Positions 3,737-64,000 of a DNA stretch of 64,000 bases are shown piece after piece (within the stretch, counting starts at the first letter, position 1; each line of letters starts with the position of its first letter). Source of the DNA: Lepidodermella squamata (Eukaryota; Animalia; Gastrotricha); assembly GCA_047495785.1 (NCBI GenBank), contig JBLDXI010000021.1, positions 2,604,001 through 2,668,000 on the forward strand, given 5' to 3'. Position numbers and translations under genes: made by a program. Under the pieces are notes generated by a model. That model ran no database searches, was not told the DNA's origin, and worked only from the letters and a program-made list of their open reading frames with translations.

Positions 3737-6476
<2,740 letters not shown>

Positions 6477-8750: not shown

Positions 8751-8851
8751 TCAACGAATGGGACGTCTCAATAATAAAAAAGGAATTTTCGAATTTTTTT
8801 TACATAGGTGCATCGCGTGTTTCTGGCCGACTGTTATAGCCACCCAAGTCG

Positions 8852-9925
8852 ATGCCGCAGCGCATCCGCCAATGGATGAGTGCCGTACTATCAGCTGTGA
8901 ATGTACTATCAGTTATCAGATCAGTCTTTTTTCCATTATTTCCAAAGACGCCCGAGACTGAACCGTTCGTTTGTAATTTGACGAAAGGAACAACAACCAC
9001 CAACCTGCAGTCGCCCGTTTTCGACCACACCGTTTTGCAGAAGTTGATGCTTGAAGCCTATCAGTCGCCCGGGCCGCCCGCAAACCATGTTTTTATGCGA
9101 AGAATATAAAACGCCAAGTCAATTTTTACCTGTAGCGCATAAAAGAACGAATCCTTTGAGGAAGCAGATACGATTCTAATTCGATGGTTCACGCTGAAGA
9201 AAGGTCTCGAGAGGAACTACAATGTTGAACCGTTTCTTACCGACGTGCCATCGATGTTGATGAGACACGGCATCAGTAGCCGCGCTGACCTATTTACCCT
9301 CGTTCTGCAATACGAGCACGCCATCGACATCATAAGACCACTGGTCAAGCCCGTCGATCTGAAACCATGCTGTGACACTAGATTCACCGATGTATACGAT
9401 TTCGAACCGCCTGTCGGACGTGAGACAGAGGTAAACGTCAATCTCGCGGGCCGAGTTCTACAATTCACCCATAAAGGCATCGTCACTACGACTCAGGGCG
9501 ACCACAACCGCGACATTGCTGGGGCTGTCTTAACAGTCGTTAATTCAGTGAATGTTATGCTAAGTTAGTAATGCTATTTTTTATATTTATTCAGTTATTT
9601 GAAAGTCGCGGTGCTCAAGAGATCAAATTCATTTATTCATGTTTGAATCTTGATTTCTTTCGCAGATATCCTGATCTGGGGCGACAAGGAAGTAGCATTA
9701 TTGGAACGTCAGCAGCGTGAACACTTGATAGCTGGCAACATGTGTGGGCATTTTTGGTTCAAGCTCGTGTTCGACGGGATGGCATAATTGTGACGTGTGG
9801 CCGTACTTTCATCGGGCTTGACAGCACTGCTCGCCGAGATTTGATGGTGCAGCCCAACAGATCAGACCGCTGGGAGTTTCGCCGGACGGACACCGTTTTG
9901 TTGCGGGATCTCGAAGCAGCTCGTA
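8852..9925 (+). pseudogene. Unknown coding-like spliced gene or pseudogene, 3' end interrupted by a transposon
   Basis: Three successive protein-like + ORF segments (8852, ~9150-9560, ~9666-9925) separated by AT-rich intron-like gaps; no family recognised. Confidence 0.3.
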
Positions 9926-46028: not shown

Positions 46029-47139
46029 AAGTGTGGCCTTTGCCAGATTCAAGTTCATCCTTGAAATTATCCGCACCCTAGTAGATATACCCGAAAGCAA
46101 TTTATTCTTACTTATCTGAACTTGGCAATCATCGAGGATTGATATTCGCGCTTCGAAAATTAGAATTTTTCTCTAAAGCTTTCTGATCTACTAGCTCCTA
46201 GAATTTGGATTGCCCCTAATTGATAGTATTTGTTTCTATAGAAGCTGGCAACTCGAGCTACTATAATTTCAACCTTGAAATATGAGCTATTCTTGAACCT
46301 TGACCTTGGATAAATCGTTCACAAAGTCGGGCTTTGGATCAGTATGTATGTGTTTTTTACGTCAATGGCCGCCATTTCAATTACTGAAGTCATACTGAAG
46401 TCGATTAGAGCTTCGAATCAAATTAACGGAATTTCCTCGGCTTAGCTATGCGGTAAAAACGCTCGAAAACAGTCTGAATTCAGGCTCCTGGTTCCTTGTC
46501 AGAATTAACATTTTCGAGAATGGGATGAAATGACTTTATGAAGGCCTTCTTTTGTCAGAAGTCTTCAGAAGTCAGAAATAACTAAGCTTAGGAATGGTCG
46601 ATTAGAATGGGCTTCCTCTATTGGAACAGCTACGGTATTTGGTATTCGCGCATATTTTTCCAATATTTTTTTTAATTCAGGCCACTATTTGAACTAAACC
46701 AGCGTAAAGCTTCTCTACTTCTTATTCGAAACAAAGAAAAAACACAGCCACGGTTGAGATAAAATTGAATATTGTATGGGAATTGTATGGTAAATTCCCA
46801 AGGCTAGGGCTATATTCCTGCACTGTATTCCTCAACAAATGGAATTTCAGGTCTTCAATCGAATCACTGGATTTTTCATTATCACGCCTATCTGAGAGAT
46901 CTCCATATTACAAGGTATTTAGCGCTATAAGCGGTCAGTATATCGATTCCACAAATCAGTGATTTTCCCTTGGGAATATTCCAGATATCATCTGTCTTGA
47001 AACCCAACAAATAATCTTCCACATAAAACCCAAGGTCCAAGGCATCATGTGGCTAAAACATAATACTCCCAGGTTCAGGGTAGGCAGCAATATCAAAAAC
47101 AAAAACCGCTAAATCGCGAGAAATCTGAACAATTCGGAT

Positions 47140-47181
47140 GGGTTAGGGTTAGGGTTAGGGTTAGGGTTAGGGTTAGGGTTA
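47140..47181 (+). repeat. Telomeric tract (GGGTTA)7
   Basis: Directly visible. Confidence 0.98.
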
Positions 47182-49238
47182 TTGGTAATAGTTTAATACA
47201 GACGAGCTGCAAACCGGGGCCTCTCGTTTTACCGAGAGTCAAACCGGGCCCTACCATTACTCCATCATAGGTATCCAAGATGAGCATCATTTTTATGTTT
47301 GTGATAATTCTTCATCACAAAAATTATGTGTTCCTAACCACTCCGCGATAATACTGAGATCCGATAAAAAATTCCCGACAAATGGCTCAAAGGAACTCAG
47401 ACAAAATTTGTATTCAAAGAATGAATACAATTCAATCAGAAGAATGACCCAGGGGAGTCATTTTCTGTTTGATCTTATTTTACCATGACCCAGGGGAGTC
47501 AGGCAAATTATTTATTTTACCATGACCCAGGGGAGTCAGGCAAATTATTAATATTTCACCATGACCCAAGGGAGTCAGGGAAATTACAAAGGATAGAATT
47601 AGAAATAAATAAATTGTAAACATTTCAACATAAGTCTACTGCCTTGGAACAGTTTCATAACTTTGAAAAAATTACTTCAAATTACATCAATATTCGTCAA
47701 ACGTTGAAGCAAAAGTTATGAAGGGTTTTACACTAGTGCCCTCAAACTTACTATATGTTGAAAACAAAGTTTAACAGATAGTGCTGTTGAAGAGCGATTG
47801 ATAATTTTACAGTCTTCGAGAAAGACTTTTATAAGCTTCTTTGATTGAATGGCTGCGTAAATTATTTGTTCGCCAGATTTTGCCAATCGTCGTGCCAAGT
47901 CAAGTCACATGGATCTTATTCATGCGTTGTATTTAATTAGCGAGTCGTTCTTTATGAATGAAATAAAATTCCAAGCTCAAGTCACGTGCAAACTAAAGCA
48001 CATAAAAAATTATTTCCAAGATATTTCGATGATTTTGCGCTAAAGCCGACCAACGAGAAAAAAATTCCTATACAGAGTACTGCGCACAATAAGAAGTACT
48101 ACGCGCGCATAATATTATAAGATATACTTATAGCCCGCATTCTGTGTGAAAAAAATGAATGTACTGGACAAATGACCAACAAATATAAGTGCGCTTTTGT
48201 GGATGTTACCATGAAATCTTCTGCTTACCTGGTAGAGAACTGTCGAAAGTATCAGGAAATCGATAGAAAAGCATGTGCAACCGTGGGTTATTCACCGCTA
48301 GGCGACTTGAAAATGATCTGAAATCGCAAAAACCTTGGAAAAATGCACCCACTGGTGTCTTGAGCGGCGTTTCTGCGAAAACCAAAATGGGTTCACCCAC
48401 AGTTTTTCACATTCCCTAGCCGAGCACATGGATAGCTTATTAGGGAAGTAAGAAATAGCCAGTTAATATGGAGGACATCCACGGCTTTTCAGTATTTTCC
48501 CTCCCGGCTTGAAAATCGTGGAAAAATCGAAAATTGTATGTTTTTAGTCGCTCTTATCTCGAAAACACCCATGGTTGCACCATAGCTTTTTGTGGTCAAA
48601 TAGGAGAAGGCACTAGGAGGAAGGTTTTAACAGGGAAAACAGCAAGAACCACCCCAACTTATCCAAGACTTTTTCGTCCTGATTAGCACTCACTACGTCA
48701 CACCCAACACCTCGAAAATGCATGGCCTGGCGTCTTTTGGGGCATTGCTGCAAGAAAGAGCATGGGTTCAACCACAGTTTTTCACGTCCTTTAGTAGAGC
48801 ACAAGAAGATCTTACTCAGGAAGTAAGAAATTGCCAGTAAATGCGGTGTTTATCCACGGGTTAAGAGTCTTTTCTCTCCACATCCGATTCAAGTCCGAAT
48901 CGAAGAGAAAGTGAGGATTTTTCATCTTTCATGGCACTTATCTTGAAAAAACCCGTGGCTGCACCATAAGTTTTTGTATTCAAACAGTAGAGGAGATTGA
49001 GAAGAAGGTTTCAAAAGAGAAAACAGCACGAACCACGACAACTTATCCACGACTTTTTCGCCTTGATGGACAATCACATTTTAAGCTCAAAATCGAACTT
49101 CAAAACTGGGCTATTCACCTTACCTTACGCGGCAGAGCCCTTATTTCACCTGTAACAAGTTGAATGAAGCGCATACTTCTTATAAAATAGCAAATATGCG
49201 GGTGCTACCATGATTTGCCATGATTTTCCATTCGGTCC
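47182..49238 (-). mobile_element. Non-coding telomere-attached module A (diverged relative of the 54-57 kb partner element)
   Basis: First ~95 nt are homologous to 54067-54160; bounded by telomeric tracts; contains 4x ATGACCCA(G/A)GGGAGTCA (47444-47577) and a ~375-bp diverged direct repeat (48440-49070). Confidence 0.6.
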
Positions 49239-49302
49239 GGGTTAGGGTTAGGGTTAGGGTTAGGGTTAGGGTTAGGGTTAGGGTTAGGGTTAGTAGGGTT
49301 AG
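49239..49302 (+). repeat. Telomeric tract (GGGTTA)9 plus variant GTAGGGTTAG
   Basis: Directly visible. Confidence 0.97.
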
Positions 49303-50251
49303 TACTATGGTCCTCCGGTTCAATGTATTGCAAATTTTCAAGCAAAACTTTCCACCCCGTGACCAAGTTGTCACGGAGGTTCGTGCTGGTCATTGAGGCG
49401 CAGGCTTGACGCCACGCGTTGACGAATTCTTCACGCGGTTCGCCGAGGTTGATGCCGCGGGCCTTGCGGATGACCGTAACCGAGCTGCCTTGACTGCAGA
49501 CGCTGTTGAAGGCGCGAGCGGTGTAGAGCGGTAGCGAGTCGGGGTCGCAGTAGAGGAACGCTTGCGACGCGTCGTCGTAGGCTAAGTGGGCGGCACCTGC
49601 GTGAGCCCAGCCGGAGCGGAGGCGAAGCGAGGTGACGGTGGCGGCGGCGAAACTGTCGCGTTCTGCAACGACTTTCGGGTCGACGAGCGAGTCTGTGGGA
49701 AAGAATTTGTTCATGCCATTAATAAAATTTCTTTCATGTGGCGTATAGCCGCCGCTGTTAACAGCAGTGCTAATGCGCGCCCGAATAATAAAATGATTAA
49801 TAAATGATGCAAGCTTGGCCTGATATCGCTCGAGGATATCGTGACGGTGCTGTTGCTCGAGCCGTTGACGACGGTTAGAGGGCGGTGGTGGCGGCGGTGA
49901 CGCGTTCCTTGGAGCACGATTGCTCGGAGCGGGCGGACGCTGCTCTCGCCATGAGCGGTCGCGATAGCGGTCTTCTCGGTCTTGAGGACGGTCTTCGCGG
50001 TAGTAATGGCGGTCGTCGCGGTAGCGCTGACGGTCTTCGTCACGGTGACGGTGTTGTTGTCGATGTTGATCGTCTTGTTCGCGGTAACGCGATTGAGACG
50101 GCGGCGGTGGTTGACGATGGCGACCGGCGGTTGATGTCGAATTGTGGTAGACATAACGGAAGCCGCCAATGTAAGCGCGCTTCGCCGGATCGTTGTTGGC
50201 CGTGGTGAACCCGTTGTAATTATTTGCAACAAAGCGATTGTGATTTGACAT
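49293..50251 (-). CDS. PLE-1 ORF1, N-terminal part (runs into telomeric repeats)
   Basis: MSNHNRFVANNYNGFT...FRYVYHNS is homologous to the N-terminus of the 831-aa ORF1 at 61134-63629. Confidence 0.8.
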
Positions 50252-50273
50252 TTATCAAGATTTATTTATACTT

Positions 50274-50307
50274 TCAACTAACGCGTTTCAAATTTCATCA
50301 GAGTTGA
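50274..50307 (-). ncRNA. Minimal type I hammerhead ribozyme
   Basis: Minus strand: TCAACT CTGATGA AATTT GAAAC GC GTT^AGTTGA; stem I TCAACT/AGTTGA. Confidence 0.8.
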
Positions 50308-51276
50308 GTGTGAAAACAGATAGATTCGTCGTCGTATTTAACCTAGCGAAGCTGCGCCCACTCGGTCCAGGTGAGATCGTGTTAGGCGCAGCCGCTTAAC
50401 GCAACAGCTGTACATTAATTAACAATAATCTGTGTGTAACGAGGCGTTGACTAGGCGTGGCGCGGCAGAAGGCGAAAACAGGTGTGCGCCGAGGTGCTGT
50501 AATCCCTAATCCCTCGCAGGTGCTCGGGTGATCACGAGCGGATTAACAGAAGGGAGCGAGAGCGGATAATCATTAAGCAGTGATTAAGTCCTGATGACTA
50601 CCGGCGTTGAGAGCTACTCGGAAGGAGGTTTGGCGGACGTAACAAATCGACCGCGAAGAAAAAATCCGGCGTGACAACGGGGCGCAAAAGTAGGCAATTT
50701 ATCAAAAACTTGCAGAAGTGACACAATTGCAGCCGAGGTGTGTTTCTAGATGTAAGAGACCACGGAGAGCTCAAAAATCGAGGTCCCAGACTCACACGAG
50801 CTGGCGTTTGGAAGTAAACATCAAAATACAAAAATATTTTCGGTTTTTTCCGGATTTCGTGAAAACTAAGTCGAAAATCAAAATTCGAAGATCGGAGCAA
50901 AAAACTACATCATATGACACATCCAAATATGCTAGTCATTAAAACGTGGTCATACTTTCATATTAGTGAGCTCGCAGTTTTTGCCGTTTTACGCGAAAAC
51001 GGTGAGGATTGGCGATCAAACAACAGTAACGTGACCCATATGTCTAGAACAGACCACGCGGAATCGATTGGAACTATTTCCCGGGAGAGTAGGTGTCACG
51101 GTTAACGAGATAATCGACTTTTACGAAAATAAATTTTGGTGAAGTGAGCGGAAGAGCGCGTAAGAGCGCACATAAGTAATTTCAGTGACTATTCACACGT
51201 TTCGCAACATTAGAACATTATTACAGATTAATTGAGCGAGAGAATTTTGAGGCGAAAAACTTTGAGCCAGAGCACG

Positions 51277-53082
51277 CTAACAGTCTTTAGTGCGGCAGAG
51301 CTGCTTGACCAGCGACGGGCCGAGGCGTGTGACGACGCGATGCCGGTGCCGTTTGGCGACGTCGAGTAGTGGCTGCAGACCGCGAACGAACTTGGTTTCG
51401 TGCTCCGGCCGCCAGTCACGATCGACCGGTCGCGAGTCAGCACGGTGTCGTAGAAACGGCCAGTCGAGGCCGGCGCAGCCGTCGACAACGCTGCGGCAGA
51501 TTGCGAAGACGTCCGCGTCGTGATAGCCGTACTTGCTGGCGGAGGCGGCGAGACTGAACACGGCCGAGGCCAGGTCCTGTGTGTTGTTACAAATTCGAAC
51601 AAAATTAAGTAAACGACCAGAAATAGCTGCACGTAAGGTGGAAAGAGGGTGATTAGAATCTGCGTGCAATAAAGGCAGCGCATTCATAGGCTTAAAGTAA
51701 ACCCCTGTTCGAATTGAACCGTCTTCAAACTTCTGCATTCGCACGTCGAGCACGTTAGCGCAGTCGTTGCTGATGTCGATTTCCAGTTTGATGCGAGGGT
51801 GCAGCGCGCTGTAGCCATTGCCCAGGTTGACGGCGGCTTCGTGGCTGGTAGCGACCGCGAAAATGTCGTCTCGGTAGCGTTTGAACAGTAGGAGGCCCTC
51901 GGAGCGGGCGACGAGGTCGCGTTCGAGAACGAAGAGAAAGGCGTCGGCGACGACGGGCGCGGTGTTCGACCCCATCGGGATGCCGTGCACTTGCCGATAA
52001 CGAGCGCCTGCAAATAGAAAAATATTGAATTTAAGCGTGATTTTTAATATTTCGACAACAAGATGGCGTTCTGCCTGAGACCCGATACTGTTCTCGCGCA
52101 GTAGTAGTTCGATAGCGGCGATGCCTTCGTCGATCGGGACGTTGGTGTAGAGATCGCTGACGTCGGCGGTGAAGAACGTAGCGTCGAGACCGCTTGTGTC
52201 GATTGACCGCACGGCTGAAAGCAGGTCGATTGTAGACATCGCACACGTCGTCATGAAGTAATTCAGCGGTTTACAGAAGGCGGCGGCGACCTTGTCTGCG
52301 GCTGCGAGCGCGGTACCTAGACAGTCGACGATCGGGCGAATCTTCGGTAGACCATCGACGTCGTTCGGTTTATGCATTTTCGGCAAGAAGTAGATGTACC
52401 GGTCACGCGTTGGCACGAGGTCGAGACCGCGGAGCAGCTTGCGTTGCGCCGCGGTACCTGAGGCGTTGATTCGCTCGACCAGAGTCTTCATTGCTTCCAG
52501 CCCGGCGGTTGACTCGTCTTCAGTGGCGTTGACGTAGTTGGCGGTTGACAGATGCTTCGTTGCCATTCGGTTGTAGTCTTCTTTCTTGAGATAGACCATG
52601 GCCGAGCCCTTATCCGACTTCTTAAAGACGCCGTTGTTGCGGAGCGCCTTGATTCGTCGCAGCTGCGGGTCGTCGTTGAGCGGGCCGATTGTGAGCGTTC
52701 GGGCAGGCTGAGCGTGACGGATGACAACTTGGCCGTTGATGCCTACGATAGGCCCTACGAAGCGTTTCGAGAACGGTACCGCTGGGACCGAGACGTCGTA
52801 GCGGTGATCGGCTCGCGGTTGAACGGTTGCACCTAGAAGATCTGACATAGATTTTAGTGAGGCAAATTTTTCTTTTTTAGTAAAATTTATAATTTTAAGG
52901 CCCCGCTCGAGTGCCTGTTTCTCGGCGGGCGCCAAACTCCCTGTCAGATCAATGACTGACGGCAGGGAACAGCGGTGAAGGCTGAAGGCGGTACCATTCT
53001 GGACAAGGCACGACATGCCCGTCAGCCCTAGCGACTTTAAAAAACGAGATCGCGGCTTTTCGATGCCTCCCTGCCTTGTCAC
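51277..53082 (-). CDS. PLE-1 reverse transcriptase, no GIY-YIG endonuclease
   Basis: YFLPKMHK..PKIRPIV, FFTADVSDLYTNVP, YRQVHGIPMGS, FKRYRDDIF, GVYFKP; stops at LVKQLCRTKDC. Confidence 0.93.
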   Translation of the reverse strand: MTRQGGIEKPRSRFLKSLGLTGMSCLVQNGTAFSLHRCSLPSVIDLTGSLAPAEKQALERGLKIINFTKKEKFASLKSMSDLLGATVQPRADHRYDVSVPAVPFSKRFVGPIVGINGQVVIRHAQPARTLTIGPLNDDPQLRRIKALRNNGVFKKSDKGSAMVYLKKEDYNRMATKHLSTANYVNATEDESTAGLEAMKTLVERINASGTAAQRKLLRGLDLVPTRDRYIYFLPKMHKPNDVDGLPKIRPIVDCLGTALAAADKVAAAFCKPLNYFMTTCAMSTIDLLSAVRSIDTSGLDATFFTADVSDLYTNVPIDEGIAAIELLLRENSIGSQAERHLVVEILKITLKFNIFLFAGARYRQVHGIPMGSNTAPVVADAFLFVLERDLVARSEGLLLFKRYRDDIFAVATSHEAAVNLGNGYSALHPRIKLEIDISNDCANVLDVRMQKFEDGSIRTGVYFKPMNALPLLHADSNHPLSTLRAAISGRLLNFVRICNNTQDLASAVFSLAASASKYGYHDADVFAICRSVVDGCAGLDWPFLRHRADSRPVDRDWRPEHETKFVRGLQPLLDVAKRHRHRVVTRLGPSLVKQLCRTKDC

Positions 53083-53976
53083 CGTGAACTGTGGCGATGT
53101 GTTCGCATAGGGCGTTGATCGAACCGCGGTGAGGTTTGTGAAGACACTTGCTGCCGTCCACCATCTTCTTGCCGCAGTACCAGAAGTGTTCTAATTCGTT
53201 CCATTCGACGCCGATTTCCGGGTCTTCTTTCTTCGTCTTCTGCCACCATTCGCGCCGGTACTTGGCCGTGTTGACTCCGCGTTGCTGAGCGAACGTTTTC
53301 GGCGAGACTTGTTGCGCGTTGGTGTTCGAACGTTTCGACTGACCGGGCGCGTTGTTGTAAACTTTCGATGCGGACGCGGCGTTTTCACCGTACATCTTCT
53401 TCGCGGGTACAGCCTTGGGCTTCGCTTTCGGAGCGACGGTCGAGATCGCTTGTTGTTTCGCGGTGGGCGGACGAGCTGTAGGCGATGGCTCCTTCTCTTC
53501 TTCTTGACGCTTCCGCTTCGACGACACTGAAGGCGGAGGCGCGACCGGGTGGGTCACGCGTTGAGAGTTCGGCGTGAGCCCGAAGAAATCCGACGCGACC
53601 ATGATAACATTTTCTCTAGGAAAAAGTGGGTTATTATTAATTAAAGCTTCGGCCGCTGTAGCGGCAGCCAGAAGCGCTGTGTCGCTCGCAGTATCGATGA
53701 CAGGTGACGAGATCTTCCTCGGTGCGGCGGGCTGAACCGATTGTTCAGAGGCGCGTGTTGTGGTCGGAGTGACCGAATCGGTGTTGTTGTTGTTCGATTC
53801 GACGACGACGACGGGTGAGGCGTTACGTGCGCTGGCCACGACTGGCGGTGAGGCGGTAGGCGTCCGCGTTGTCGGAGACTTGGCGACTGGCGCGGCGATA
53901 GGTTCGCTGTTCTTGTTGACGATGGGTGAGGCGACGGCGGCGGCTGCTGGAGGCGCGACCTTCGATGTGACGTCGA
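52949..53976 (-). CDS. PLE-1 ORF1, C-terminal part with C2H2/BED-like zinc finger (5' truncated by telomeric tract)
   Basis: WYCGKKMVDGSKCLHKPHRGSINALCEHIATVH; homologous to the PLE-2 ORF1 C-terminus. Confidence 0.8.
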
Positions 53977-54066
53977 GGGTTAGGGTTAGGGTTAGGGTTA
54001 GGGTTAGGGTTAGGGTTAGGGTTAGGGTTAGGGTTAGGGTTGGGGTTAGGGTTAGGGTTAGGGTTA
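53977..54066 (+). repeat. Telomeric tract, 15 units (one TTGGGG variant)
   Basis: Directly visible. Confidence 0.98.
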
Positions 54067-54249
54067 TTGTAATGATTTAATACAGACGAGCTGTAAACCG
54101 GGGATTCTCCGAAGAGAATGACACCGGGCCCTACCACTACTCCCTCGGGAGCCGATCCAGAGAACGTGGTCTCAGTGATCAGAACAAACAATGGAACGAT
54201 CGGAAACCGCGCGAGATTAATCCGATAATATTCAATATCAGGACCACGA
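54067..54249 (-). mobile_element. Short truncated copy of non-autonomous partner element B (3' end only)
   Basis: Identical to 54328-54510; capped by a telomeric tract. Confidence 0.85.
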
Positions 54250-54327
54250 GGGTTAGGGTTAGGGTTAGGGTTAGGGTTAGGGTTAGGGTTAGGGTTAGGG
54301 TTAGGGTTAGGGTTGGGGTTAGGGTTA
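54250..54327 (+). repeat. Telomeric tract, 13 units (one TTGGGG variant)
   Basis: Directly visible. Confidence 0.98.
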
Positions 54328-54684
54328 TTGTAATGATTTAATACAGACGAGCTGTAAACCGGGGATTCTCCGAAGAGAATGACACCGGGCCCTACCACTA
54401 CTCCCTCGGGAGCCGATCCAGAGAACGTGGTCTCAGTGATCAGAACAAACAATGGAACGATCGGAAACCGCGCGAGATTAATCCGATAATATTCAATATC
54501 AGGACCACGAGGGGTTCGCCGATATAATTAGATAGTCACGGGGGACTGCTGTATAAACTCGCAAACATTAATTAAACAAGTTCATTACCGAAACTCCAAA
54601 GAACGTTGTCGTTTGTAACTGCTTAAACCAGTTAAACCAGCAATTGTAACTGCATAAACCATGAATGAAATGGAACCGTAAACT

Positions 54685-54753
54685 AAGAGGTAGCCTTTAT
54701 CAGACCGGTTTCGCTACTTGGCTAGGGTAGCTCATCAGTGACTTTTACCTCTT
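54685..54753 (-). ncRNA. Type I hammerhead ribozyme
   Basis: Minus strand: AAGAGGTA AAA GTCA CTGATGA GCTAC-CCTAGCCAA-GTAGC GAAAC CG GTC^TGAT AAAGGC TACCTCTT; stem II and extended stem I pair. Confidence 0.9.
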
Positions 54754-55040
54754 GCAAAAGAATGATTTTATTCTGCTAGCTTGAGCATTTAAATAGGCAG
54801 CAGGCCACGTTTATCCAAGCAAGGTCAGGCGCCACATGCTTGATTTTTCGTGTGTGTAAGATCACGTGAATGCGTGATTTCATGCGTGAAAAACTTTATT
54901 TTATTATCGTGCAGCATTTTAATTTCCCCATAATATAATTTATTAGTGACTTGTTGAAAATGTCGAATGTATTTATTATCGTAATCATTTTATCTCATAT
55001 AAACAGTTCCATGTCATAAATTTAAAATCAGACGGTCATC

Positions 55041-57237
55041 GAGCAACATGTGATGAAATTTGAAACCTCAAAAAATTAATTTTAAACTTAGAAATAGGTC
55101 ATTTGGCATCGCTCTGGAACCTTTTCGGTCAACGTAACTGGCAACGTGACTTGATATTCACGATCAGCGGTCCTTGTAGTACTAATTCCGTGAAATATTC
55201 ATGACTTGGTTCAGGATTGAGCTACTTGTGATGAAATTTGAGACCTCAAAAAATTAATTTTAAACTTCGAAATAGGTCATTTGGCATCGCTCTGGAACCT
55301 TTTCGGTCAACGCAACTGGCAAAGTGACTTGATATTCACGATCAGCGGTCCTTGTAATACTAATTTCGTGAAATATTCATGACTTGGTTCAGGATTGAGC
55401 AACTTGTGATGAAATTTGAAACCTCAAAAAATTAATTTTAAACTTCGAAATAGGTCATTTGGCATCGCTCTGGAACCTTTTCGGTCAACGCAACTGGCAA
55501 AGTGACTTGATATTCACGATCAGCGGTCCTTGTAGTACTAATTCCGTGAGATATTCATGACTTGGTTCAGGATTGAGCAACTTGTGATGAGATTTGAGAC
55601 CTCAAAAAATTAATTTTAAACTTCGAAATAGGTCATTTGGCATCGCTCTGGAACCTTTTCGGTCAACGCAACTGGCAAAGTGACTTGATATTCACGATCA
55701 GCGGTCCTTGTAGTACTAATTCCGTGAAATATTCATGACTTGGTTCAGGATTGAGCAACTTGTGATGAAATTTGAAACCTCAAAAAATTAATTTTAAACT
55801 TCGAAATAGGTCATTTGGCATCGCTCTGGAACCTTTTCGGTCAACGCAACTGGCAAAGTGACTTGATATTCACGATCAGCGGTCCTTGTAGTACTAATTC
55901 CGTGAGATATTCATGACTTGGTTCAGGATTGAGCAACTTGTGATGAGATTTGAGACCTCAAAAAATTAATTTTAAACTTCGAAATAGGTCATTTGGCATC
56001 GCTCTGGAACCTTTTCGGTCAACGCAACTGGCAAAGTGACTTGATATTCACGATCAGCGGTCCTTGTAGTACTAATTCCGTGAAATATTCATGACTTGGT
56101 TCAGGATTGAGCAACTTGTGATGAAATTTGAAACCTCAAAAAATTAATTTTAAACTTAGAAATAGGTCATTTGGCATCGCTCTGGAACCTTTTCGGTCAA
56201 CGCAACTGGCAAAGTGACTTGATATTCACGATCAGCGGTCCTTGTAGTACTAATTCCGTGAAATATTCATGACTTGGTTCAGGATTGAGCAACTTGTGAT
56301 GAAATTTGAGACCTCAAAAAATTAATTTTAAACTTCGAAATAGGTCATTTGGCATCGCTCTGGAACCTTTTCGGTCAACGCAACTGGCAAAGTGACTTGA
56401 TATTCACGATCAGCGGTCCTTGTAGTACTAATTCCGTGAAATATTCATGACTTGGTTCAGGATTGAGCAACTTGTGATGAAATTTGAAACCTCAAAAAAT
56501 TAATTTTAAACTTCGAAATAGGTCATTTGGCATCGCTCTGGAACCTTTTCGGTCAACGCAACTGGCAAAGTGACTTGATATTCACGATCAGCGGTCCTTG
56601 TAGTACTAATTCCGTGAGATATTCATGACTTGGTTCAGGATTGAGCAACTTGTGATGAGATTTGAGACCTCAAAAAATTAATTTTAAACTTCGAAATAGG
56701 TCATTTGGCATCGCTCTGGAACCTTTTCGGTCAACGCAACTGGCAAAGTGACTTGATATTCACGATCAGCGGTCCTTGTAGTACTAATTCCGTGAAATAT
56801 TCATGACTTGGTTCAGGATTGAGCAACTTGTGATGAAATTTGAAACCTCAAAAAATTAATTTTAAACTTAGAAATAGGTCATTTGGCATCGCTCTGGAAC
56901 CTTTTCGGTCAACGCAACTGGCAAAGTGACTTGATATTCACGATCAGCGGTCCTTGTAGTACTAATTCCGTGAAATATTCATGACTTGGTTCAGGATTGA
57001 GCAACTTGTGATGAAATTTGAGACCTCAAAAAATTAATTTTAAACTTCGAAATAGGTCATTTGGCATCGCTCTGGAACCTTTTCGGTCAACGCAACTGGC
57101 AAAGTGACTTGATATTCACGATCAGCGGTCCTTGTAGTACTAATTCCGTGAAATATTCATGACTTGGTTCAGGATTGAGCAACTTGTGATGAAATTTGAA
57201 ACCTCAAAAAATTAATTTGCAACTTCGAAATAGGTCT
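55041..57237. repeat. 178-bp tandem satellite, ~12.3 copies
   Basis: GAGCAAC/GAGCTAC starts at 55041, 55219, 55397 ... 57177 (period 178). Confidence 0.97.
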
Positions 57238-57551
57238 TTTGGTTTCGCTCAAGAGCACCTCGTTCCCCTTCACAGCCCCTTTGGTTTCTTGGTGATACAT
57301 TGTACCGAACGGGCAAGATCAGTTAGGGTTATTGTAATGATTTAATACAGACGAGCTGTAAACCGGGGATTCTCCGAAGAGAATGACACCGGGCCCTACC
57401 ACTACTCCCTCGGGAGCCGATCCAGAGAACGTGGTCTCAGTGATCAGAACAAACAATGGAACGATCGGAAACCGCGCGAGATTAATCCGATAATATTCAA
57501 TATCAGGACCACGAGGGGTTCGCCGATATAATTAGATAGTCACGGGGGACT

Positions 57552-57713
57552 GGGTTAGGGTTAGGGTTAGGGTTAGGGTTAGGGTTAGGGTTAGGGTTAG
57601 GGTTAGGGTTAGGGTTAGGGTTAGGGTTAGGGTTAGGGTTAGGGTTAGGGTTAGGGTTAGGGTTAGGGTTAGGGTTAGGGTTAGGGTTAGGGTTAGGGTT
57701 AGGGTTAGGGTTA
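57552..57713 (+). repeat. Telomeric tract (GGGTTA)27
   Basis: Directly visible. Confidence 0.98.
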
Positions 57714-58684
57714 ATTAGTAAGCTGCGGTCCGCCTGTATTTTGTTTTGCGCAAGGTGATAAGTAAAAGCCTGCCAGCCCTTCGTAACGTTGGTGAGCAAG
57801 TCAGGGCTGCGCATGGCGCGTTTCATTTCGTTGCAGGCGCATTGAAATTGTTCGTAGATCGCCGGCCAGTAGATGTTGCTCGACTTGCGCAGGACTCGTA
57901 GCACGCTGTTGCTGCTCGCGACAGTGTTGAAGACCCGCGACGTTTGGGCCGCTCTGTCCGACGGATGGCAGTAGTTTGCTGCTTGGCGTGCATCGGTGAA
58001 CGCACTTTCGAGAGCTTGCTCGTGTCCTGTCATGGATTTATGACGTATCTCGGAAACAACATTGTAAAAAAGCAAATCAACGATGCCCTGAGTGCTAGCT
58101 TCGAACCGATGCTCGCGCGGGAAAAACTTCTCGAGCACTGGCCGGAGTGCCTTCTCGTGAGCGGTGGTGGGTCTCTCGTTTTGAGGTTTGGCGTAGTCTT
58201 CACTGAAGTTGGCTGTGGCGAGCTTGGCTAAAATGAAGAAATGATGAATAAAATTGTTGAGTTTCTCGCGGAAGCGATCGAGGAGATCTTGTCGATGTTC
58301 CCTCGCTCGACGTTGCCCTTCTGCTGCTGCCTTAGAAGGTAGCTGCCTGTTGTCCGTTGAGTCTTGCGGTCGCTTCGTACCATCCGCGTGCCGACGGTCT
58401 GACTGAGCGTTCGAACCAGACCCGTGCGAGCGACTGGAGCGGCCGTGCGTAGCACCCTCGTGCGAACGGTAAGATCGAGTGTTCGAACTGGACGCTGCTG
58501 CGGAGACTGTCTGTTTCGAGCGGCTTTGATGACGATCGCGCCGTTCTTGTTGATAGGGCGGATTGTGACGACTCGAGTTGTAATAGACGTAGCGGAAGCG
58601 GCCAAAGATGGCCCGTCCCGGGCGGTCGTTGTTAATTTCTGTAAACCCGTTGTTATTAGAAACAAAACGGTTACGGTTAGACAT
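57714..58684 (-). CDS. PLE-2 ORF1 5' portion in the terminal repeat (pLTR), fused to telomeric repeats
   Basis: Near-identical to the first ~325 aa of 61134-63629, then poly(NP). Confidence 0.85.
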
Positions 58685-58693
58685 AATGAGATT

Positions 58694-58732
58694 TATTGGT
58701 AGACCGGTTTCACTATTTCTTCAGTACCAATA
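58694..58732 (-). ncRNA. Minimal type I hammerhead ribozyme
   Basis: Minus strand: TATTGGTA CTGAAGA AATAGT GAAAC CG GTC^TACCAATA; perfect 8-bp stem I. Confidence 0.88.
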
Positions 58733-59461
58733 TCATACTTCTGATAGAATTATAACGAGTGACATTATTGTGACAGCGCTATGATAACACCGTACCAGGT
58801 GCGTGTGCCTCGGACTATGTTAGGCGCAGCGGATTAGGATTACAAGGTGTTGTTTCGCGCACACGTGTTACTAAGTTCAAGTTAACTACGGCAGGTGTGC
58901 GTCTAGGTGTGCGCACTATATCGGATTAGCGCACAGATGTTGTGGCCACTACTTGTTAATCGGTGATTCTAGCCAAATGGGTAACAAGGTGTGCTACTAG
59001 GCTGGCGAGGCCTTGATGACGAGCTAACGTGACATCTGTGCTGTTGAGAGACGACAATTACAATGATGAAGATGACCAATAGAAGATTGACAGCTGACGC
59101 AAGGCGTTATTGCCGGCGACATCAAGGTATTGAAAGCAATAAAAGTCATAAAACAGGATATGCCGATTCTAAGGTCGTTATCGACTTTGGATCTCGCTGC
59201 GGGTTACTGGTTGATACCAGGATGGCTTGGCCGCCGTGGTCGTGCGCGACTATGACTCGCTGACGTCCAGAACATTAGACCTCGCTGCGGGTTACTGGCC
59301 GATACCGCGTTGAACAGGCTATAAAACATGAATGGAGAAACATATAATACTGCGTAATGGTGGTAATTAATCTAATGAATTAATTAAGAATAATTAATAA
59401 ACGGTCGGTAGCTTTGTTGCTACTCTTGACATCGTCGCTGGCTACTGGTCGATTGGTTCGG

Positions 59462-61288
59462 CTAGCAGTCTTTCGTTCGGCAGAGTTGCTTGACAACGCT
59501 TGGACCGAGTCGGGTGACGAGACGAATGCGTCGCCGGCGTGCGATGTCGTACAGTGGCTGTAGTGGCCGAACGAACTTCGTTTCGACCGGTGGTCGCCAG
59601 TCTTGTTGGTAGCGAAAGTTGTCGACACGATTGCGTAGGAACGGCCAGTCTTGACCTTCGCAACTTGTGATGACGTCGTGGGCGAGCGCAAAAACATCTG
59701 CGTCGACGTAGCCGTACTTGGACGCGGAACTGGCGAGGCTAAAAATGGCAGAACACAAGTCTTCTGTATTATTGCAAATTCTTAAAAAGTTTAAAATGCG
59801 CCCTGTGACTGCGGCCCGGAGAGTCGATTCTGGGTGATTGGAGTCAGCGTGTAAGAGAGGCAACGAGTTCATGGGCTTGAAGTAAACGCCGGTTCTGATG
59901 GAGCCATCGGGGTACTTGCTCAGGCGGACGTCGAGAACATTCGCACGCTCGGAGCTGATCTCGACTTCGAGCTTTATACGTGGATGTAGTGCGCCGTATT
60001 CGTTGCCTAGCGTGACTGCGGCCTCTTGAGTGGTGCAGATTGCGAAGACGTCGTCTCGATACCGTTTGAACAACATCACGTCGGTTTGGCGTTCGACCAG
60101 ATCGCGCTCGAGCACATAGAGGAACGCGTCCGCTACGACTGGGGCACTGTTGGAGCCCATCGGAATTCCGTGCACCTGACGATACTGAATGCCTGAAAAA
60201 TAGAAAATGTTTGAATTAAGTGTTATTTCGAGCATTGCGACGACGAGGTCGCGTTCGGGTGCGGTTCCGATTGCGTTCTCGTCCAACATGGTCTTGATCG
60301 CTGCGATTCCTTCTCCAATCGGTACGTTGGTGTACAAGTCGCTCACGTCTGCGGTAAAGAACGTGACGTCGCACCCGCTTGAGTCGATTGCGCGAACAGC
60401 GTGTAGTAGGTCGATGGTAGACGAGGCACAGGTAGTCATGAACCGGTTAAGCGGTTTGCAGTAAGCTGCGGCGACCTTGTCTGCGGCGGCGAGCGCTGTG
60501 CCCAAACAGTCGACAATCGGCCGAATTTTCGGTAGACCATCTACGTCAAATGCCTTGTGCATTTTTGGTAAAAAATAAATATGACGATCGCGGGTTGGCT
60601 CGAGATCGAGCCCGCGTAACAGCTTGCGTTGTGCGGCTGTACCGGTTGCCATAACGCGGTCGACGAGAGTCTTCATTGCTTCGAGGCCTCGCTTCTCTTC
60701 TGATTCTTCGGCGTGCACATAGTTCGCTGTAGTGAGATGTTTGAGCGCCATTTTCGAGTAGTTCGCCTTTGACATGTAGACCATCGCTGCACCTTTGTCA
60801 GATTTCTTGAATACGCCGTCTTTGCGGAGGGCGCGTAATCGTCGTAGCTGTGGGTCGTCGACGATGGGACCGAGCCGTACTGTGCGAGCTGGCTGTGCGT
60901 GGCGGATAACGACTTGTCCGTGGATCCCGATAATCGGACCAACGAAGCGCTTTGAGAACGCTACAGAGGGAACCTTGACGTCGAGGCCGTGGTCGGGACG
61001 AGGGACGACGGTTGCGCCAAGGAGATCTGAAATGACATTAACACAGGCAATTTTATCTTTTTTCGTGAAATTAATGATTTTAAGGCCACGCTCGAGTGCC
61101 TGTTTCTCGGCTGGCTGGAGAGTTCCCGTCAGGTCAACGACGGACGGTAGAGAACAGCGATGCAGCGTCCCGTACGCTCCGTTTTGGACTAGGGATGGGA
61201 TGGCCCTGAGCCCGAGCGATCCCGCGAAACCGCGACGCGATGTCTGCGTGTCTGTCTCCTTTTTCGTGCTTCTCGCGGATGTGTGTGA
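59462..61288 (-). CDS. PLE-2 reverse transcriptase (open frame 61288-59462; no start codon until 60784), no endonuclease
   Basis: HIYFLPKMHK, FFTADVSDLYTNVP, YRQVHGIPMGS, FKRYRDDVF; the upstream ATG-less part (LVQNG...LHRCSLPSVVDLTG) is homologous to PLE-1 RT. Confidence 0.93.
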   Translation of the reverse strand, partial: SHTSARSTKKETDTQTSRRGFAGSLGLRAIPSLVQNGAYGTLHRCSLPSVVDLTGTLQPAEKQALERGLKIINFTKKDKIACVNVISDLLGATVVPRPDHGLDVKVPSVAFSKRFVGPIIGIHGQVVIRHAQPARTVRLGPIVDDPQLRRLRALRKDGVFKKSDKGAAMVYMSKANYSKMALKHLTTANYVHAEESEEKRGLEAMKTLVDRVMATGTAAQRKLLRGLDLEPTRDRHIYFLPKMHKAFDVDGLPKIRPIVDCLGTALAAADKVAAAYCKPLNRFMTTCASSTIDLLHAVRAIDSSGCDVTFFTADVSDLYTNVPIGEGIAAIKTMLDENAIGTAPERDLVVAMLEITLNSNIFYFSGIQYRQVHGIPMGSNSAPVVADAFLYVLERDLVERQTDVMLFKRYRDDVFAICTTQEAAVTLGNEYGALHPRIKLEVEISSERANVLDVRLSKYPDGSIRTGVYFKPMNSLPLLHADSNHPESTLRAAVTGRILNFLRICNNTEDLCSAIFSLASSASKYGYVDADVFALAHDVITSCEGQDWPFLRNRVDNFRYQQDWRPPVETKFVRPLQPLYDIARRRRIRLVTRLGPSVVKQLCRTKDC

Positions 61289-63629
61289 TCAGACCATTGA
61301 TTGAGCAGCTCTTGCCGACGTGGCCGCATCGTTTGCCGCTCGGTAGCTTGAAAGCGCACGACCACTTGCCGTTGTGAAACTCGACGAGTATCGACGGATC
61401 GCGTATCTTTTCTTTCTTCCACCATTCGCGGGTGAACTCTGCTTTGCTCAAGTTCTTCTGTATGGCGTAGTCTTGCTTTGATAGCGTGGTCGTCGTATCA
61501 CCCTGCTCTTGACGGACCGACTGAGCGTTCGAACCGTGCATCGGTGGGTTGTGCGCAGGCGGTCGCGATGCCGGTGCCAGGCGTTTGAGACACGTTCCGG
61601 GTTGCCCGTACATTTGTTGCGCCGAGATCGCTTTGACGACGGCGGGCTTCTTGGACGGCGCCGGAAGTTCTGTTGGTGACTTGTCTTTCGGGCTGGTGGC
61701 ACGAGCTCGCTTGGTGGGCACCGAGGCGTTTGGCGCACCTGGTCGAGGAGCGTTCTGCGAGACCGCGTTGATCGCTTCACCGAAGAACGAGGCGACCGAG
61801 CTGACATCTGAAATAGAATTGCAATTATTAAAACGAGATTCGACATTGGCTGCAGCTGCTGCTAGCGCGGTGTCGCTGGCACTGTCGATCGGTGAAGCGT
61901 CCTTGCTCGGAGTCTGAGGCAGAGGCGCGGACGTGGGCGTTAACTGGGCTGCTGTCGATTTGTCGGCAGTGACCGTTTGTGGAGTAGCCGGGCGGGCTAC
62001 ATTGATAGTCGTTGAGTGGTCGGCGGTCGCCGCTGAATCGCGGCTGCCACCGTTCTTGGTAACCAAGTTGCTAGCTTCAGAAGTTGACCGAGCGGTAGTC
62101 GACGCTGAACCGCGACTGTCAACGCTCTTTGAGACCAAGTTGCTAGCTTCAGAAGTTGACCGAGCGGTAGTCGACGCTGAACCGCGACTGTCATCGCTCT
62201 TTGAGACCGAGTTGCTAGCTTCAGAAGTTGACCGAGCGGTAGTCGACGCTGAACCGCGACTGTCATCGCTCTTTGAGACCAAGTTGCTAGCTTCAGAAGT
62301 TGACCGTGCGGGAATCGAGGCCAAATCGCGACCGAGACCTCTCTTCGGTACCAGTGCGTTGATCTGAGCGGTTGAACGTGCGGAAATCCAGGTCGAATCG
62401 CGTTCTTCTGTGGTGAGCAAGCCCCAATCACCCGGGCTCGGATGGCCAGTCTGAGCGGTTGAACCGGGAGCCGCCTTGGGTGTCGGTGGTAACGCTTGAC
62501 GAGCTGTTTCTGATTGACCTGTCGGCGTAACCGGATTGACGGCCGGGTCGCTTACGACCATCGGCGACGAAGACTGAATGGTGTCGTGCGCTTCAACTGT
62601 TATGTTGACAGGTGCTTCCCTTGGGGAGGCATGGACCTGAGAAAGAGAGTTAGGGTTAATTAGTAAGCTGCGGTCCGCCTGTATTTTGTTTTGCGCAAGG
62701 TGATAAGTAAAAGCCTGCCAGCCCTTCGTAACGTTGGTGAGCAAGTCAGGGCTGCGCATGGCGCGTTTCATTTCGTTGCAGGCGCATTGAAATTGTTCGT
62801 AGATCGCCGGCCAGTAGATGTTGCTCGACTTGCGCAGGACTCGTAGCACGCTGTTGCTGCTCGCGACAGTGTTGAAGACCCGCGACGTTTGGGCCGCTCT
62901 GTCCGACGGATGGCAGTAGTTTGCTGCTTGGCGTGCATCGGTGAACGCACTTTCGAGAGCTTGCTCGTGTCCTGTCATGGATTTATGACGTATCTCGGAA
63001 ACAACATTGTAAAAAAGCAAATCAACGATGCCCTGAGTGCTAGCTTCGAACCGATGCTCGCGCGGGAAGAACTTCTCGAGCACTGGCCGGAGTGCCTTCT
63101 CGTGAGCGGTGGTGGGTCTCTCGTTTTGAGGTTTGGCGTAGTCTTCACTGAAGTTGGCTGTGGCGAGCTTGGCTAAAATGAAGAAATGATGAATAAAATT
63201 GTTGAGTTTCTCGCGGAAGCGATCGAGGAGATCTTGTCGATGTTCCCTCGCTCGACGTTGCCCTTCTGCTGCTGCCTTAGAAGGTAGCTGCCCGTTGTCC
63301 GTTGAGTCTTGCGGTCGCTTCGTACCATCCGCGTGCCGACGGTCTGACTGAGCGTTCGAACCAGACCCGTGCGAGCGACTGGAGCGGCCGTGCGTAGCAC
63401 CCTCGTGCGAACGGTAAGATCGAGTGTTCGAACTGGACGCTGCTGCGGAGACTGTCTGTTTCGAGCGGCTTTGATGACGATCGCGCCGTTCTTGTTGATA
63501 GGGCGGATTGTGACGACTCGAGTTGTAATAGACGTAGCGGAAGCGGCCAAAGATGGCCCGTCCCGGGCGGTCGTTGTTAATTTCTGTAAACCCGTTGTTA
63601 TTAGAAACAAAACGGTTACGGTTAGACAT
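61134..63629 (-). CDS. PLE-2 ORF1 (831 aa): basic N-terminus, helical domain, S/T-rich repeats, C-terminal C2H2/BED-like finger
   Basis: Full ORF with ATG; WSCAFKLPSGKRCGHVGKSCSINGLITHIREKH. Confidence 0.88.
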   Translation of the reverse strand: MSNRNRFVSNNNGFTEINNDRPGRAIFGRFRYVYYNSSRHNPPYQQERRDRHQSRSKQTVSAAASSSNTRSYRSHEGATHGRSSRSHGSGSNAQSDRRHADGTKRPQDSTDNGQLPSKAAAEGQRRAREHRQDLLDRFREKLNNFIHHFFILAKLATANFSEDYAKPQNERPTTAHEKALRPVLEKFFPREHRFEASTQGIVDLLFYNVVSEIRHKSMTGHEQALESAFTDARQAANYCHPSDRAAQTSRVFNTVASSNSVLRVLRKSSNIYWPAIYEQFQCACNEMKRAMRSPDLLTNVTKGWQAFTYHLAQNKIQADRSLLINPNSLSQVHASPREAPVNITVEAHDTIQSSSPMVVSDPAVNPVTPTGQSETARQALPPTPKAAPGSTAQTGHPSPGDWGLLTTEERDSTWISARSTAQINALVPKRGLGRDLASIPARSTSEASNLVSKSDDSRGSASTTARSTSEASNSVSKSDDSRGSASTTARSTSEASNLVSKSVDSRGSASTTARSTSEASNLVTKNGGSRDSAATADHSTTINVARPATPQTVTADKSTAAQLTPTSAPLPQTPSKDASPIDSASDTALAAAAANVESRFNNCNSISDVSSVASFFGEAINAVSQNAPRPGAPNASVPTKRARATSPKDKSPTELPAPSKKPAVVKAISAQQMYGQPGTCLKRLAPASRPPAHNPPMHGSNAQSVRQEQGDTTTTLSKQDYAIQKNLSKAEFTREWWKKEKIRDPSILVEFHNGKWSCAFKLPSGKRCGHVGKSCSINGLITHIREKHEKGDRHADIASRFRGIARAQGHPIPSPKRSVRDAASLFSTVRR
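62040..62310 (-). repeat. 72-bp in-frame tandem repeat (~4 copies) in ORF1
   Basis: (C)A/GAGTTGCTAGCTTCAGAAGTTGACCG at 62064, 62136, 62208, 62280; encodes STSEASNLVSKSDDSRGSASTTAR. Confidence 0.92.
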
Positions 63630-63638
63630 AATGAGATT

Positions 63639-63677
63639 TATTGGTAGACCGGTTTCACTATTTCTTCAGTACCAATA
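63639..63677 (-). ncRNA. Minimal type I hammerhead ribozyme (copy of 58694-58732)
   Basis: Same sequence at offset 4945. Confidence 0.88.
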
Positions 63678-64000
63678 TCATACTTCTGATAGAATTATAA
63701 CGAGTGACATTATTGTGACAGCGCTATGATAACACCGTACCAGGTGCGTGTGCCTCGGACTATGTTAGGCGCAGCGGATTAGGATTACAAGGTGTTGTTT
63801 CGCGCACACGTGTTACTAAGTTCAAGTTAACTACGGCAGGTGTGCGTCTAGGTGTGCGCACTATATCGGATTAGCGCACAGATGTTGTGGCCACTACTTG
63901 TTGATCGGTGATTCTAGCCAAATGGGTAACAAGGTGTGCTACTAGGCTGGCGAGGCCTTGATGACGAGCTAACGTGACATCTGTGCTGTTGAGAGACGAC

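Follow-up and report, generated by a model that had tools for sequence, protein, structure and literature searches.

The window analysed here comprises 64,000 nucleotides (nt) of contig JBLDXI010000021.1 from Lepidodermella squamata (positions 2,604,001 to 2,668,000 of the forward strand). Its final ~17 kb form an array of Penelope-like elements (PLEs) that lack an endonuclease (EN), accompanied by non-coding passengers. The array is built of seven minus-strand modules (M1–M7), separated by five plus-strand (TTAGGG)n tracts (T1–T5) and by two 10-nt telomere stubs, GTTAGGGTTA. Matches to an 18-mer of the telomere repeat number 56 in the five tracts, against 0 expected. Tract T1, (TTAGGG)7 (47140–47181), directly adjoins unique host DNA and forms the inner limit of the array. 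It is followed by M1, a non-coding module of 2057 nt (47182–49238), by T2, (TTAGGG)9 (49239–49293), and by M2, a 4682-nt autonomous unit of family A (49294–53975) with long tracts on both flanks. T3 (15 repeats, 53976–54066) and T4 (13 repeats, 54249–54327) enclose M3 (182 nt, 54067–54248), and T4 leads to M4, a non-coding module of 2994 nt (54328–57321). The first stub, assigned from our reading of the junction (57322–57331), separates M4 from M5 (220 nt, 57332–57551), after which T5, (TTAGGG)27 (57552–57713), precedes M6, the autonomous unit of family B (57714–62648), with a period of 4945 nt counting the stub. The second stub (62649–62658) lies between M6 and M7 (62659–64000), a second family B copy that is cut by the end of the window and is 99.7% identical to positions 57714–59055; self-comparison of M7 with the 3' part of M6 gives 99.7% identity over 1355 nt. 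M3 and M5 are 5'-truncated duplicates of the 3' end of M4, to which both are 100% identical. Families A (M2) and B (M6) share 73% nucleotide identity and 75% amino-acid identity in their reverse transcriptases (RTs). An earlier, sequence-only reading of this DNA had counted five telomere-bounded minus-strand modules; the orientation and the tract boundaries stand, while the count rises to seven with the two stubs that it had overlooked.

The G-rich strand of the telomere repeats is the plus strand, which places the chromosome end to the right. The coding frames, the hammerhead motifs, and the shared 3' modules all lie on the minus strand, and the 3' ends of all modules are found on the low-coordinate side, facing the centromere. 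The strands and the junctions thus confirm a head-to-tail chain between telomere tracts, with 3' ends directed toward the centromere, as had been proposed. All seven module 3' junctions meet the tracts in one phase (...GGGTTA immediately before the module), and the truncated 5' ends are capped by repeats that begin with GGGTTA. The full-length 5' ends (M4 and M6), in turn, fall exactly at the 10-nt stub, the complement of UAACCCUAAC. Read as TAACCCTAAC, the stub is identical at both positions in the window and in all close relatives.

A near-perfect duplication of 261 bp comprises a tract with M3 in one copy and a tract with the 3' end of M4 in the other. Tracts T3 and T4 each carry one TTGGGG variant, at 54040 and 54313, respectively. 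The first (54040–54045) is the fourth repeat from the M3 3' end, and the second (54313–54318) is the second repeat from the M4 3' end; such variants may derive from an RNA tail that had been transcribed off the flanking tract of the donor, or may represent a telomerase error. The 5' truncation points of M3 (54245–54252, ..CACGAGGG) and M5 (57540–57552, ..GGGGGACT) fall at G-rich runs of the M4 sequence, which suggests that aborted complementary DNAs ending in G-runs are preferentially healed by telomerase. With its open reading frames (ORFs) intact and its module copies 99.7–100% identical, the array is apparently young.

The RT frames of both families are intact and match RVT_1. In family A the RT (51277–53082, minus strand) has 601 residues counted from a GTG codon within an open frame of 637 residues, with the DKG motif at residue 157 and YRDD at residue 403. 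The open frame of family B (59465–61288, minus strand) has 608 residues, with DKG at 164 and YRDD at 410. Both RTs carry the RICNN motif of the thumb, and Asp157, Lys158, Asp405, and Asp406 are invariant in an alignment of 47 RT sequences. Their relatives bear precomputed assignments to the PLE-associated Pfam families DUF8422 and HTH_animal. An AlphaFold2 model of the family A RT (pLDDT, the predicted local confidence score, 92.8) has telomerase reverse transcriptases (TERTs) as all seven of its best fold matches in the Protein Data Bank (PDB), with E values of 2.3e-9 to 6e-8 and TM scores of 0.40–0.45. At the level of sequence, the RT profile matches TERT weakly (E 5e-4), among other RTs, and a single-sequence search of the PDB was uninformative. 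A likeness by eye between the C-terminal tail of the RT and the tail that follows the EN in EN-containing PLEs was dropped as non-significant.

A GIY-YIG profile built from four relatives annotated with PF01541, which detects 69 of the 167 collected proteins (scored here as EN+), finds no match in the six frames of positions 47001–64000, even at E<=10. The array holds PLE-type RTs, with both DKG and YRDD present, and no GIY-YIG domain detected by the profile, in agreement with the sequence-only reading. Among the nearest RT proteins, 15 are EN-free, 570–600 residues long, and 35–62% identical, whereas the next tier, at 28–32% identity, carries an RT together with GIY-YIG. An exhaustive search of 1.84 billion representatives yielded only about a dozen clusters close to the window RTs. 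In an RT tree of 74 rows, A and B are sisters (support 100) within a clade of 21 rows (support 100), which is nested in an EN-free clade of 28 rows (support 99, stem 0.8); the 27 EN+ rows all lie outside it. The profile detects GIY-YIG in none of the 28 rows, and the long, supported branch separating them shows that the RT is not nested in an EN-containing clade from which EN was recently lost. All 20 of the clade members and neighbours that were looked up come from Logan, ENA, or JGI contigs, and none (0/20) has an NCBI or UniRef name or accession. The window RTs thus belong to a deep EN-free clade known solely from metagenome contigs.

The second protein of the autonomous elements, ORF1, is found in an unusual arrangement, for which the contigs of ten relatives (L001–L010) were compared; seven of them (L001–L006 and L010) form the close-clade set. 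In RNA sense, M2 consists of the C-terminal half of ORF1, the RT, a hammerhead-like motif, and the N-terminal half of ORF1. The family A N-half (49296–50251, minus strand; 318 residues, here called the MSN..NRF protein) has no stop codon and enters the CCCTAA tract in the Asn-Pro frame, and the C-half (52949–53975, minus strand) includes a C2H2-type zinc finger and a REWW motif, as well as a conserved IDxASDTAL segment that lies upstream of the first Met of the frame. The corresponding halves of family B in M6 are located at 57714–58684 and 61134–62648 (both minus strand). Across the M7/M6 junction, however, family B has a complete ORF1 of 831 residues (61134–63629, minus strand), in which the N-half is joined to the zinc-finger C-half by the stub, read on the minus strand as Asn-Pro-Asn. 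Read from the hammerhead-like motif, a single ORF thus continues across the stub and into the zinc-finger part, and its end overlaps the RT. What had been described as a separate 3' ORF ("ORF3") is the ORF1 N-half.

A hammerhead-like motif, the MSN..NRF protein, and a stub follow one another in this order in 7/7 close-clade contigs. The ATG of the MSN..NRF protein lies 11–73 nt downstream of the motif, with the exception of L010 (~130 nt), in which the N-terminus of the equivalent protein differs. The TAACCCTAAC stub follows ~820–905 nt past the motif in the relatives; in L010 the repeats are found ~1.7 kb downstream, at the contig end. In the unrotated contigs, ORF1 is open through the stub for 513 residues (L005) and 567 residues (L006). 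After joining overlapping contig ends it reaches 670 residues in L002 and 660 in L004, and it is open up to the contig ends in L001 and L003. Three contigs, L002, L004, and L005, are self-closing, with end overlaps of 99, 30, and 104 nt, and the stub is translated as Asn-Pro-Asn in family B of the window and in L001–L006 alike. As read from these sequences, the integration unit (stub to stub) is a circularly permuted version of the predicted coding unit (motif to motif), shifted by about 0.9–1.0 kb, so that a complete ORF1 would need a tandem or multimeric template. In a single terminal copy such as M2 ORF1 lies in two pieces, whereas the M7/M6 pair provides one complete coding unit.

Both halves of ORF1 are conserved at the protein level among the families. 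The N-halves of A and B share 31% identity (E 2e-39), and identity to L001 and L002 is ~29% (E 2e-39 to 1e-14 across families); the C-half is 35% identical across families and retains an invariant C..C..H..H pattern. For the N-half there is no match in Pfam and none in a word-indexed homology search, and a profile search returned the L005 protein only. In an AlphaFold2 model of the family B N-half (57714–58684), residues 118–322 form an all-helical bundle of ~40-residue helices with pLDDT >90, with a conserved N-terminal peptide of 35 residues and a disordered, Arg/Ser-rich stretch ahead of it; the model has no fold match in the PDB (best E 0.9). In-frame coding tandem repeats are present in the family B C-half (72 nt x4.3, 62026–62332, minus strand, Ser/Thr-rich) and in the family A N-half (21 nt x3.4, 49968–50039, minus strand, Arg/Asp-rich).

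Relative to the zinc-finger ORF, the RT occupies the +1 frame in both window families and in five relatives (L001, L002, L005, L006, and L010), as the sequence-only reading had noted for this locus. The switch of conservation from the ORF1 frame (..Q-L/R-F-R..) to the RT frame (..G/S-F-x-G..) coincides with UUU-CGN in six of these seven elements and with a U6 run in family A. In the latter, the putative +1 frameshift site homologous to UUU-CGN lies at 53031–53050, and in family B the junction, UUU-CGC, lies at 61218–61234 (both minus strand). The family B RT frame has no AUG ahead of its conserved N-terminal residues. This arrangement suggests programmed +1 slippage of Phe-tRNA ahead of the Arg codon at UUU-CGN. 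A frameshift between ORF1 and RT has already been drawn for EN-free PLEs (PMC8557442, Fig. 1 legend).

The hammerhead-like motif of family A (50271–50310, minus strand) comprises CUGAUGA, a 5-nt linker, GAAA, the loop CGCG, UU, and a 6-bp helix I, with the predicted cleavage site, after GUU at ~50280, 31 nt upstream of the ORF1 ATG. Family B has one such motif in M6 (58693–58733) and one in M7 (63638–63678), both on the minus strand and in the part duplicated between the two modules; cleavage is predicted after GUC, at ~58702 and ~63647. In nine aligned autonomous elements, CUGA.GA, GAAA, and U are invariant. Helix I, 9 bp in this alignment, is 90% paired, compared with 34–43% when the partner is slid; 9/9 of its pairs have changed on both sides, which none of 500 shuffles equalled. 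Helix III is reduced to 1 bp with a palindromic loop, A-[CCGG, CUAG, CGCG or UCUAGA]-U, and helix II is absent from the autonomous families, with a linker of 4–6 A/U-rich nt in its place. In turn, M4 carries a canonical type-I hammerhead (54694–54747, minus strand) with a 5-bp helix II (GCUAC/GUAGC) and a palindromic helix III, ACCGGU; the canonical form with a 5-bp helix II is shared by M4 and the more distant contig L008 and covaries at two pairs. A relaxed scan of both strands of the 64 kb located only four sites, all in the array (M2, M4, M6, and M7), and none in M1, M3, or M5. The proposal of non-coding ribozyme partners thus holds for M4 and fails for the other three. Rfam at gathering thresholds reports nothing in the array, and at E<=10 gives two weak matches to RAGATH-1-hammerhead, the sole matches to a ribozyme family there. 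The structures described for this motif and for the 3' module discussed below are drawn from covariation only.

The non-coding modules are held together by their 3' ends. M1 has no ORF of at least 100 residues, and M4 contains a satellite of 178 bp x12.4 (55041–57250). M1 and M4, together with the fragments M3 and M5, have only a 3' module of ~85 nt in common, at 85% identity. In M4 this structured module lies at 54328–54404 (minus strand), and in M1 it comprises the 3' ~85 nt and includes GGUAGGGCCCGG at 47244–47255 (minus strand). The window contains four occurrences of its motif GGTAGGGCCCGG, where 0.03 are expected. The consensus structure is rod-shaped: its outer 8-bp helix stays paired through three differences between M1 and M4, and its interior includes a CCGG/CCGG helix and a hairpin with a stem that is wholly different in M1, M4, and L009. 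Immediately behind the rod comes a single-stranded AAUAACCC tail. The minimum free energy (MFE) z-score of the module is not significant. Its identification as a known ribozyme was dropped, with no match to a ribozyme family of Rfam at E<=10 and no CUGANGA/GAAA core on either strand. M1 also shows internal repeats of 37 nt x3 (47475–47586) and a diverged duplication of ~375 nt at 73% identity (48340–48879).

The same module points to a partner outside the window. In L009, which is autonomous and belongs to the sister (tier 2) lineage, GGUAGGGCCCGG is located 53 nt before (AACCCT)9 at the 3' end, and the 3' ~580 nt of M1 share blocks with the 3' untranslated region of L009 (E 7e-10). Families A and B are without the GGUAGGGCCCGG 3' module and are probably not the drivers of the non-coding modules, because that module is common to L009 and not to A or B. 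The sequence match suggests an L009-like RT, encoded at another place in the genome, as the probable agent that mobilises the non-coding modules in trans. The view of autonomous and non-autonomous members of one system is consequently retained in part: both kinds are present, but they do not share their 3' ends within the window. A pattern scan of metagenomes for the 3' module returned one contig only, L011 (JGI Ga0307489_10011128), where GGTAGGGCCCGG[Y]ACAGAC occurs twice (minus strand, 638–725), flanking CCCTAAA-type (TTTAGGG) repeats; conservation of the motif thus extends over hosts whose telomere repeats differ. L007, a sister-lineage autonomous element (RT P0033), contains two satellite arrays, at 1029–2873 and 8081–9243, with periods of ~276 and 169 bp, and satellite cargo may be common in that lineage.

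Taken as a whole, this locus is probably a subtelomeric array of EN-free PLEs that were added to the chromosome end by reverse transcription primed on the G-overhang, with telomerase re-extending the end between additions. The 7–27 repeats between modules imply an active telomerase, and we infer a telomere-extending role for the elements. The templates would be transcripts that span more than one unit or that read through into the proximal CCCTAA tract. The G-overhang would anneal to the C-strand tail or to a stub, and the RT would copy toward the 5' end of the RNA. An RT passing a stub without halting would yield tandem units, whereas one halting at a stub or a G-run would leave an end that is a substrate for telomerase. 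A weak, dimer-dependent hammerhead would cut some of the transcripts shortly before ORF1, providing the message for ORF1, and the ORF1-RT protein would be made from the trimmed message by +1 frameshifting. Weak cleavage would leave uncleaved RNA to serve as template. HDV (hepatitis delta virus)-like ribozymes trim some LINE messages in a similar way (PMC7761336).

Several observations weigh against this interpretation. The transcript ends, the cleavage by the hammerhead, and the frameshifting are all deduced from sequence, and motifs with no helix II and a 1-bp helix III may be inactive as ribozymes; Rfam gives the autonomous motifs 23.8 bits against a threshold of 56.3, and the MFE z-scores of the hammerhead-like motifs are no better than those of shuffles. 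The lone family A copy is flanked by long tracts, and its ORF1 halves meet them in different frames. Two of the ORF1 fusions depend on closing short-read contigs, which are possibly assembly collapses. The RT tree comes from a quick search, has no outgroup, and takes its EN status from a home-made profile. The window ends within M7, short of the true chromosome end, and the 99.7–100% identity among M3, M4, and M5 and between M6 and M7 could have arisen by unequal exchange instead.

The permutation between the message and the integrated unit allows a further step, in which the elements would replicate through circular (cleaved and ligated) or obligatorily multimeric RNA that is copied in a rolling fashion by the chromosome end. 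We regard this as unlikely, though worth keeping in mind. A more conventional scheme treats the unit as a linear three-ORF element of the Athena/Coprina type, with the MSN ORF as an independent third gene and the open frame over the stub incidental; its RNA would begin shortly before the zinc-finger ORF and end in a 3' tail complementary to the telomere repeat, and short-stub tandems would result from template jumping. M2 and M6 are bounded exactly in this manner, partial tandems (pseudo-LTRs, named after long terminal repeats) are typical of PLEs (PMC8557442), and the telomere repeat is in any case open in two of its three reading frames. However, the frame is unbroken over the stub in five complete and two partial independent elements, always as Asn-Pro-Asn, conserved residues of the ORF1 C-half precede any Met, and the family B RT frame likewise has conserved N-terminal residues with no AUG before them. 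The motif, moreover, is positioned shortly upstream of the MSN ATG (11–73 nt; ~130 nt in L010), as expected for the start of a coding unit. A linear three-ORF element is for these reasons distinctly unlikely.

We attach still less weight to a strictly circular intermediate, in which unit RNA released by the hammerhead would be circularised by a host RNA ligase, as in retrozymes, and the chromosome end would prime on the stub; an RT going round the circle would produce stub-to-stub units, and further rounds would produce tandems. The coding and integration units are exact circular permutations, the full-length 5' ends coincide with the stub, and three related contigs self-close. Hammerhead retrozymes are known to make circular RNAs, and PLEs/Terminons have been proposed as their mobilisers (PMC7761336). 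Tandem DNA, though, yields the same closure in an assembly, cleavage by the minimal hammerhead-like motifs may be inefficient, a circular coding RNA template of 4–5 kb has not been described for PLEs, and read-through linear multimers account for everything equally well. Finally, an origin with no terminal retrotransposition (EN-driven insertion into telomere repeats as in SART/TRAS, recombination or break-induced replication, or an assembly artefact), which the 99.7–100% identity of module copies, the 261-bp near-perfect duplication, and a window that shows neither a chromosome end nor reads might favour, is very unlikely given the lack of a nuclease domain in six frames, the uniform orientation, the constant phase of the 3' junctions and the capping of truncated 5' ends by new repeats, the unequal tract lengths with the TTGGGG variant at different positions in two of them, and the recurrence of the unit architecture in independent assemblies.

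The host sequence inward of the array is of a different character. Positions 1–47100 are free of telomere repeats, of tandem repeats, and of copies of the array modules. Ordinary genes are found in the first 47.1 kb, namely an HSP70 exon, a 2-hydroxyacid dehydrogenase, a Sushi-domain ORF, and a SNORD36-like small nucleolar RNA (snoRNA), and long ORFs are sparse there, which fits an intron-rich, animal-type genome. The SNORD36-like C/D box snoRNA (4769–4842, plus strand; 40.5 bits) lies ~60 nt upstream of the HSP70 exon ORF (4901–5911, plus strand) and is probably hosted in an intron of an hsp70/hsc70 gene.

Comparison with systems in the literature places the array among the EN-deficient PLEs of the known Athena/Terminon/Coprina kind, an assignment made by published descriptions and not by the RT tree. 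The kind itself has already been described, including in TTAGGG hosts of Coprina (PMC8557442, PMC6431247, PMC13159263); the sequence-only reading knew of it, and had not recognised the zinc-finger ORF1 with a +1-frame RT or the satellite-carrying partner as a described family. Athena and the Terminons, for which the comparison rests on reviews, share with the window elements a PLE RT without EN, a head-to-tail arrangement in which 3' ends face the centromere, and 5' truncations capped by telomere repeats, as well as short reverse-complement telomere repeats for docking of the G-overhang, a hammerhead motif, and ORF1 placed upstream of the RT across a frameshift (PMC6431247; PMC8557442). The telomere repeat here is TTAGGG and theirs is TGTGGG, and the docking repeats of Athena, (ACACCC)n or (TCACCC)n, lie immediately downstream of a 3'-terminal hammerhead, whereas those of the window are CCCTAA and the motif is separated from the 3' end by ~1.0 kb in families A and B, 0.82–0.9 kb in the relatives, and ~0.4 kb in M4. 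Also unlike Athena and the Terminons, the interval between motif and docking site in the autonomous families encodes the ORF1 N-half, and the stub is in frame inside ORF1; the units of 4.7–4.9 kb are not giant, as Terminons are.

Coprina elements of fungi, a diatom, and Selaginella resemble the window in their TTAGGG-type hosts, their position at chromosome ends, telomere repeats on both sides, and ORFs directed toward the centromere (PMC13159263). They are usually described with one ORF, in contrast to the ORF1 and RT found here, but the published Coprina-1_Alen of Ascochyta lentis also has two, an ORF1 with a coil and disordered regions and an RT-thumb ORF2, in ~4.5 kb with terminal direct repeats (PMC13159263). 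A stub-spanning ORF has not been reported for Coprina, and, compared with Coprina hosts, the host flank here is animal-type and intron-rich (Sushi domain, intronic snoRNA). In fungal and protist PLEs the hammerhead acts as a monomer and its helix III is large (PMC4209133). Among the EN+ PLEs (Penelope/Poseidon, Neptune, and Nematis), DKG, the RICNN thumb motif, and partial tandems are shared with the window elements, which differ in lacking GIY-YIG and in being attached to chromosome ends and not to internal sites. The minimal hammerheads of EN+ PLEs are of type I and, like the motif of the window, have a helix III of 1 bp and a palindromic loop, which suggest that they act as dimers (PMC4209133), but their helix II is unusually long (6–8 bp), whereas the autonomous motif of the window has none. 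HeT-A, TART, and TAHRE of Drosophila and SART and TRAS of Bombyx also form head-to-tail telomeric arrays in which expression depends on a neighbouring copy, although their RTs belong to an unrelated, LINE-like class; SART and TRAS use an endonuclease, and Drosophila is without telomerase repeats between elements. In HeT-A, the promoter lies in the 3' end of the upstream element.

In the available literature we found no description of four features of this system: the docking stub in frame inside ORF1 with the permutation that results from it, the helix-II-less motif ~1.0 kb from the docking site (0.82–0.9 kb in relatives), the UUU-CGN junction, and the GGUAGGGCCCGG 3' module of the non-coding passengers. 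The anatomy of the array thereby gives testable predictions, which concern the stub in ORF1, 5' processing at the helix-II-less motif, the +1 site at UUU-CGN, and the 3' module of the passengers. Among retroelements, EN-free PLEs are the nearest kin of telomerase and figure centrally in ideas on its origin; the locus, together with seven related contigs, offers a compact example of such elements. If true, rolling copying would link telomerase-like repeat addition, circular RNAs of the retrozyme type, and PLEs. The array also appears to extend the EN-free telomeric PLEs to an animal-type genome with TTAGGG telomeres.

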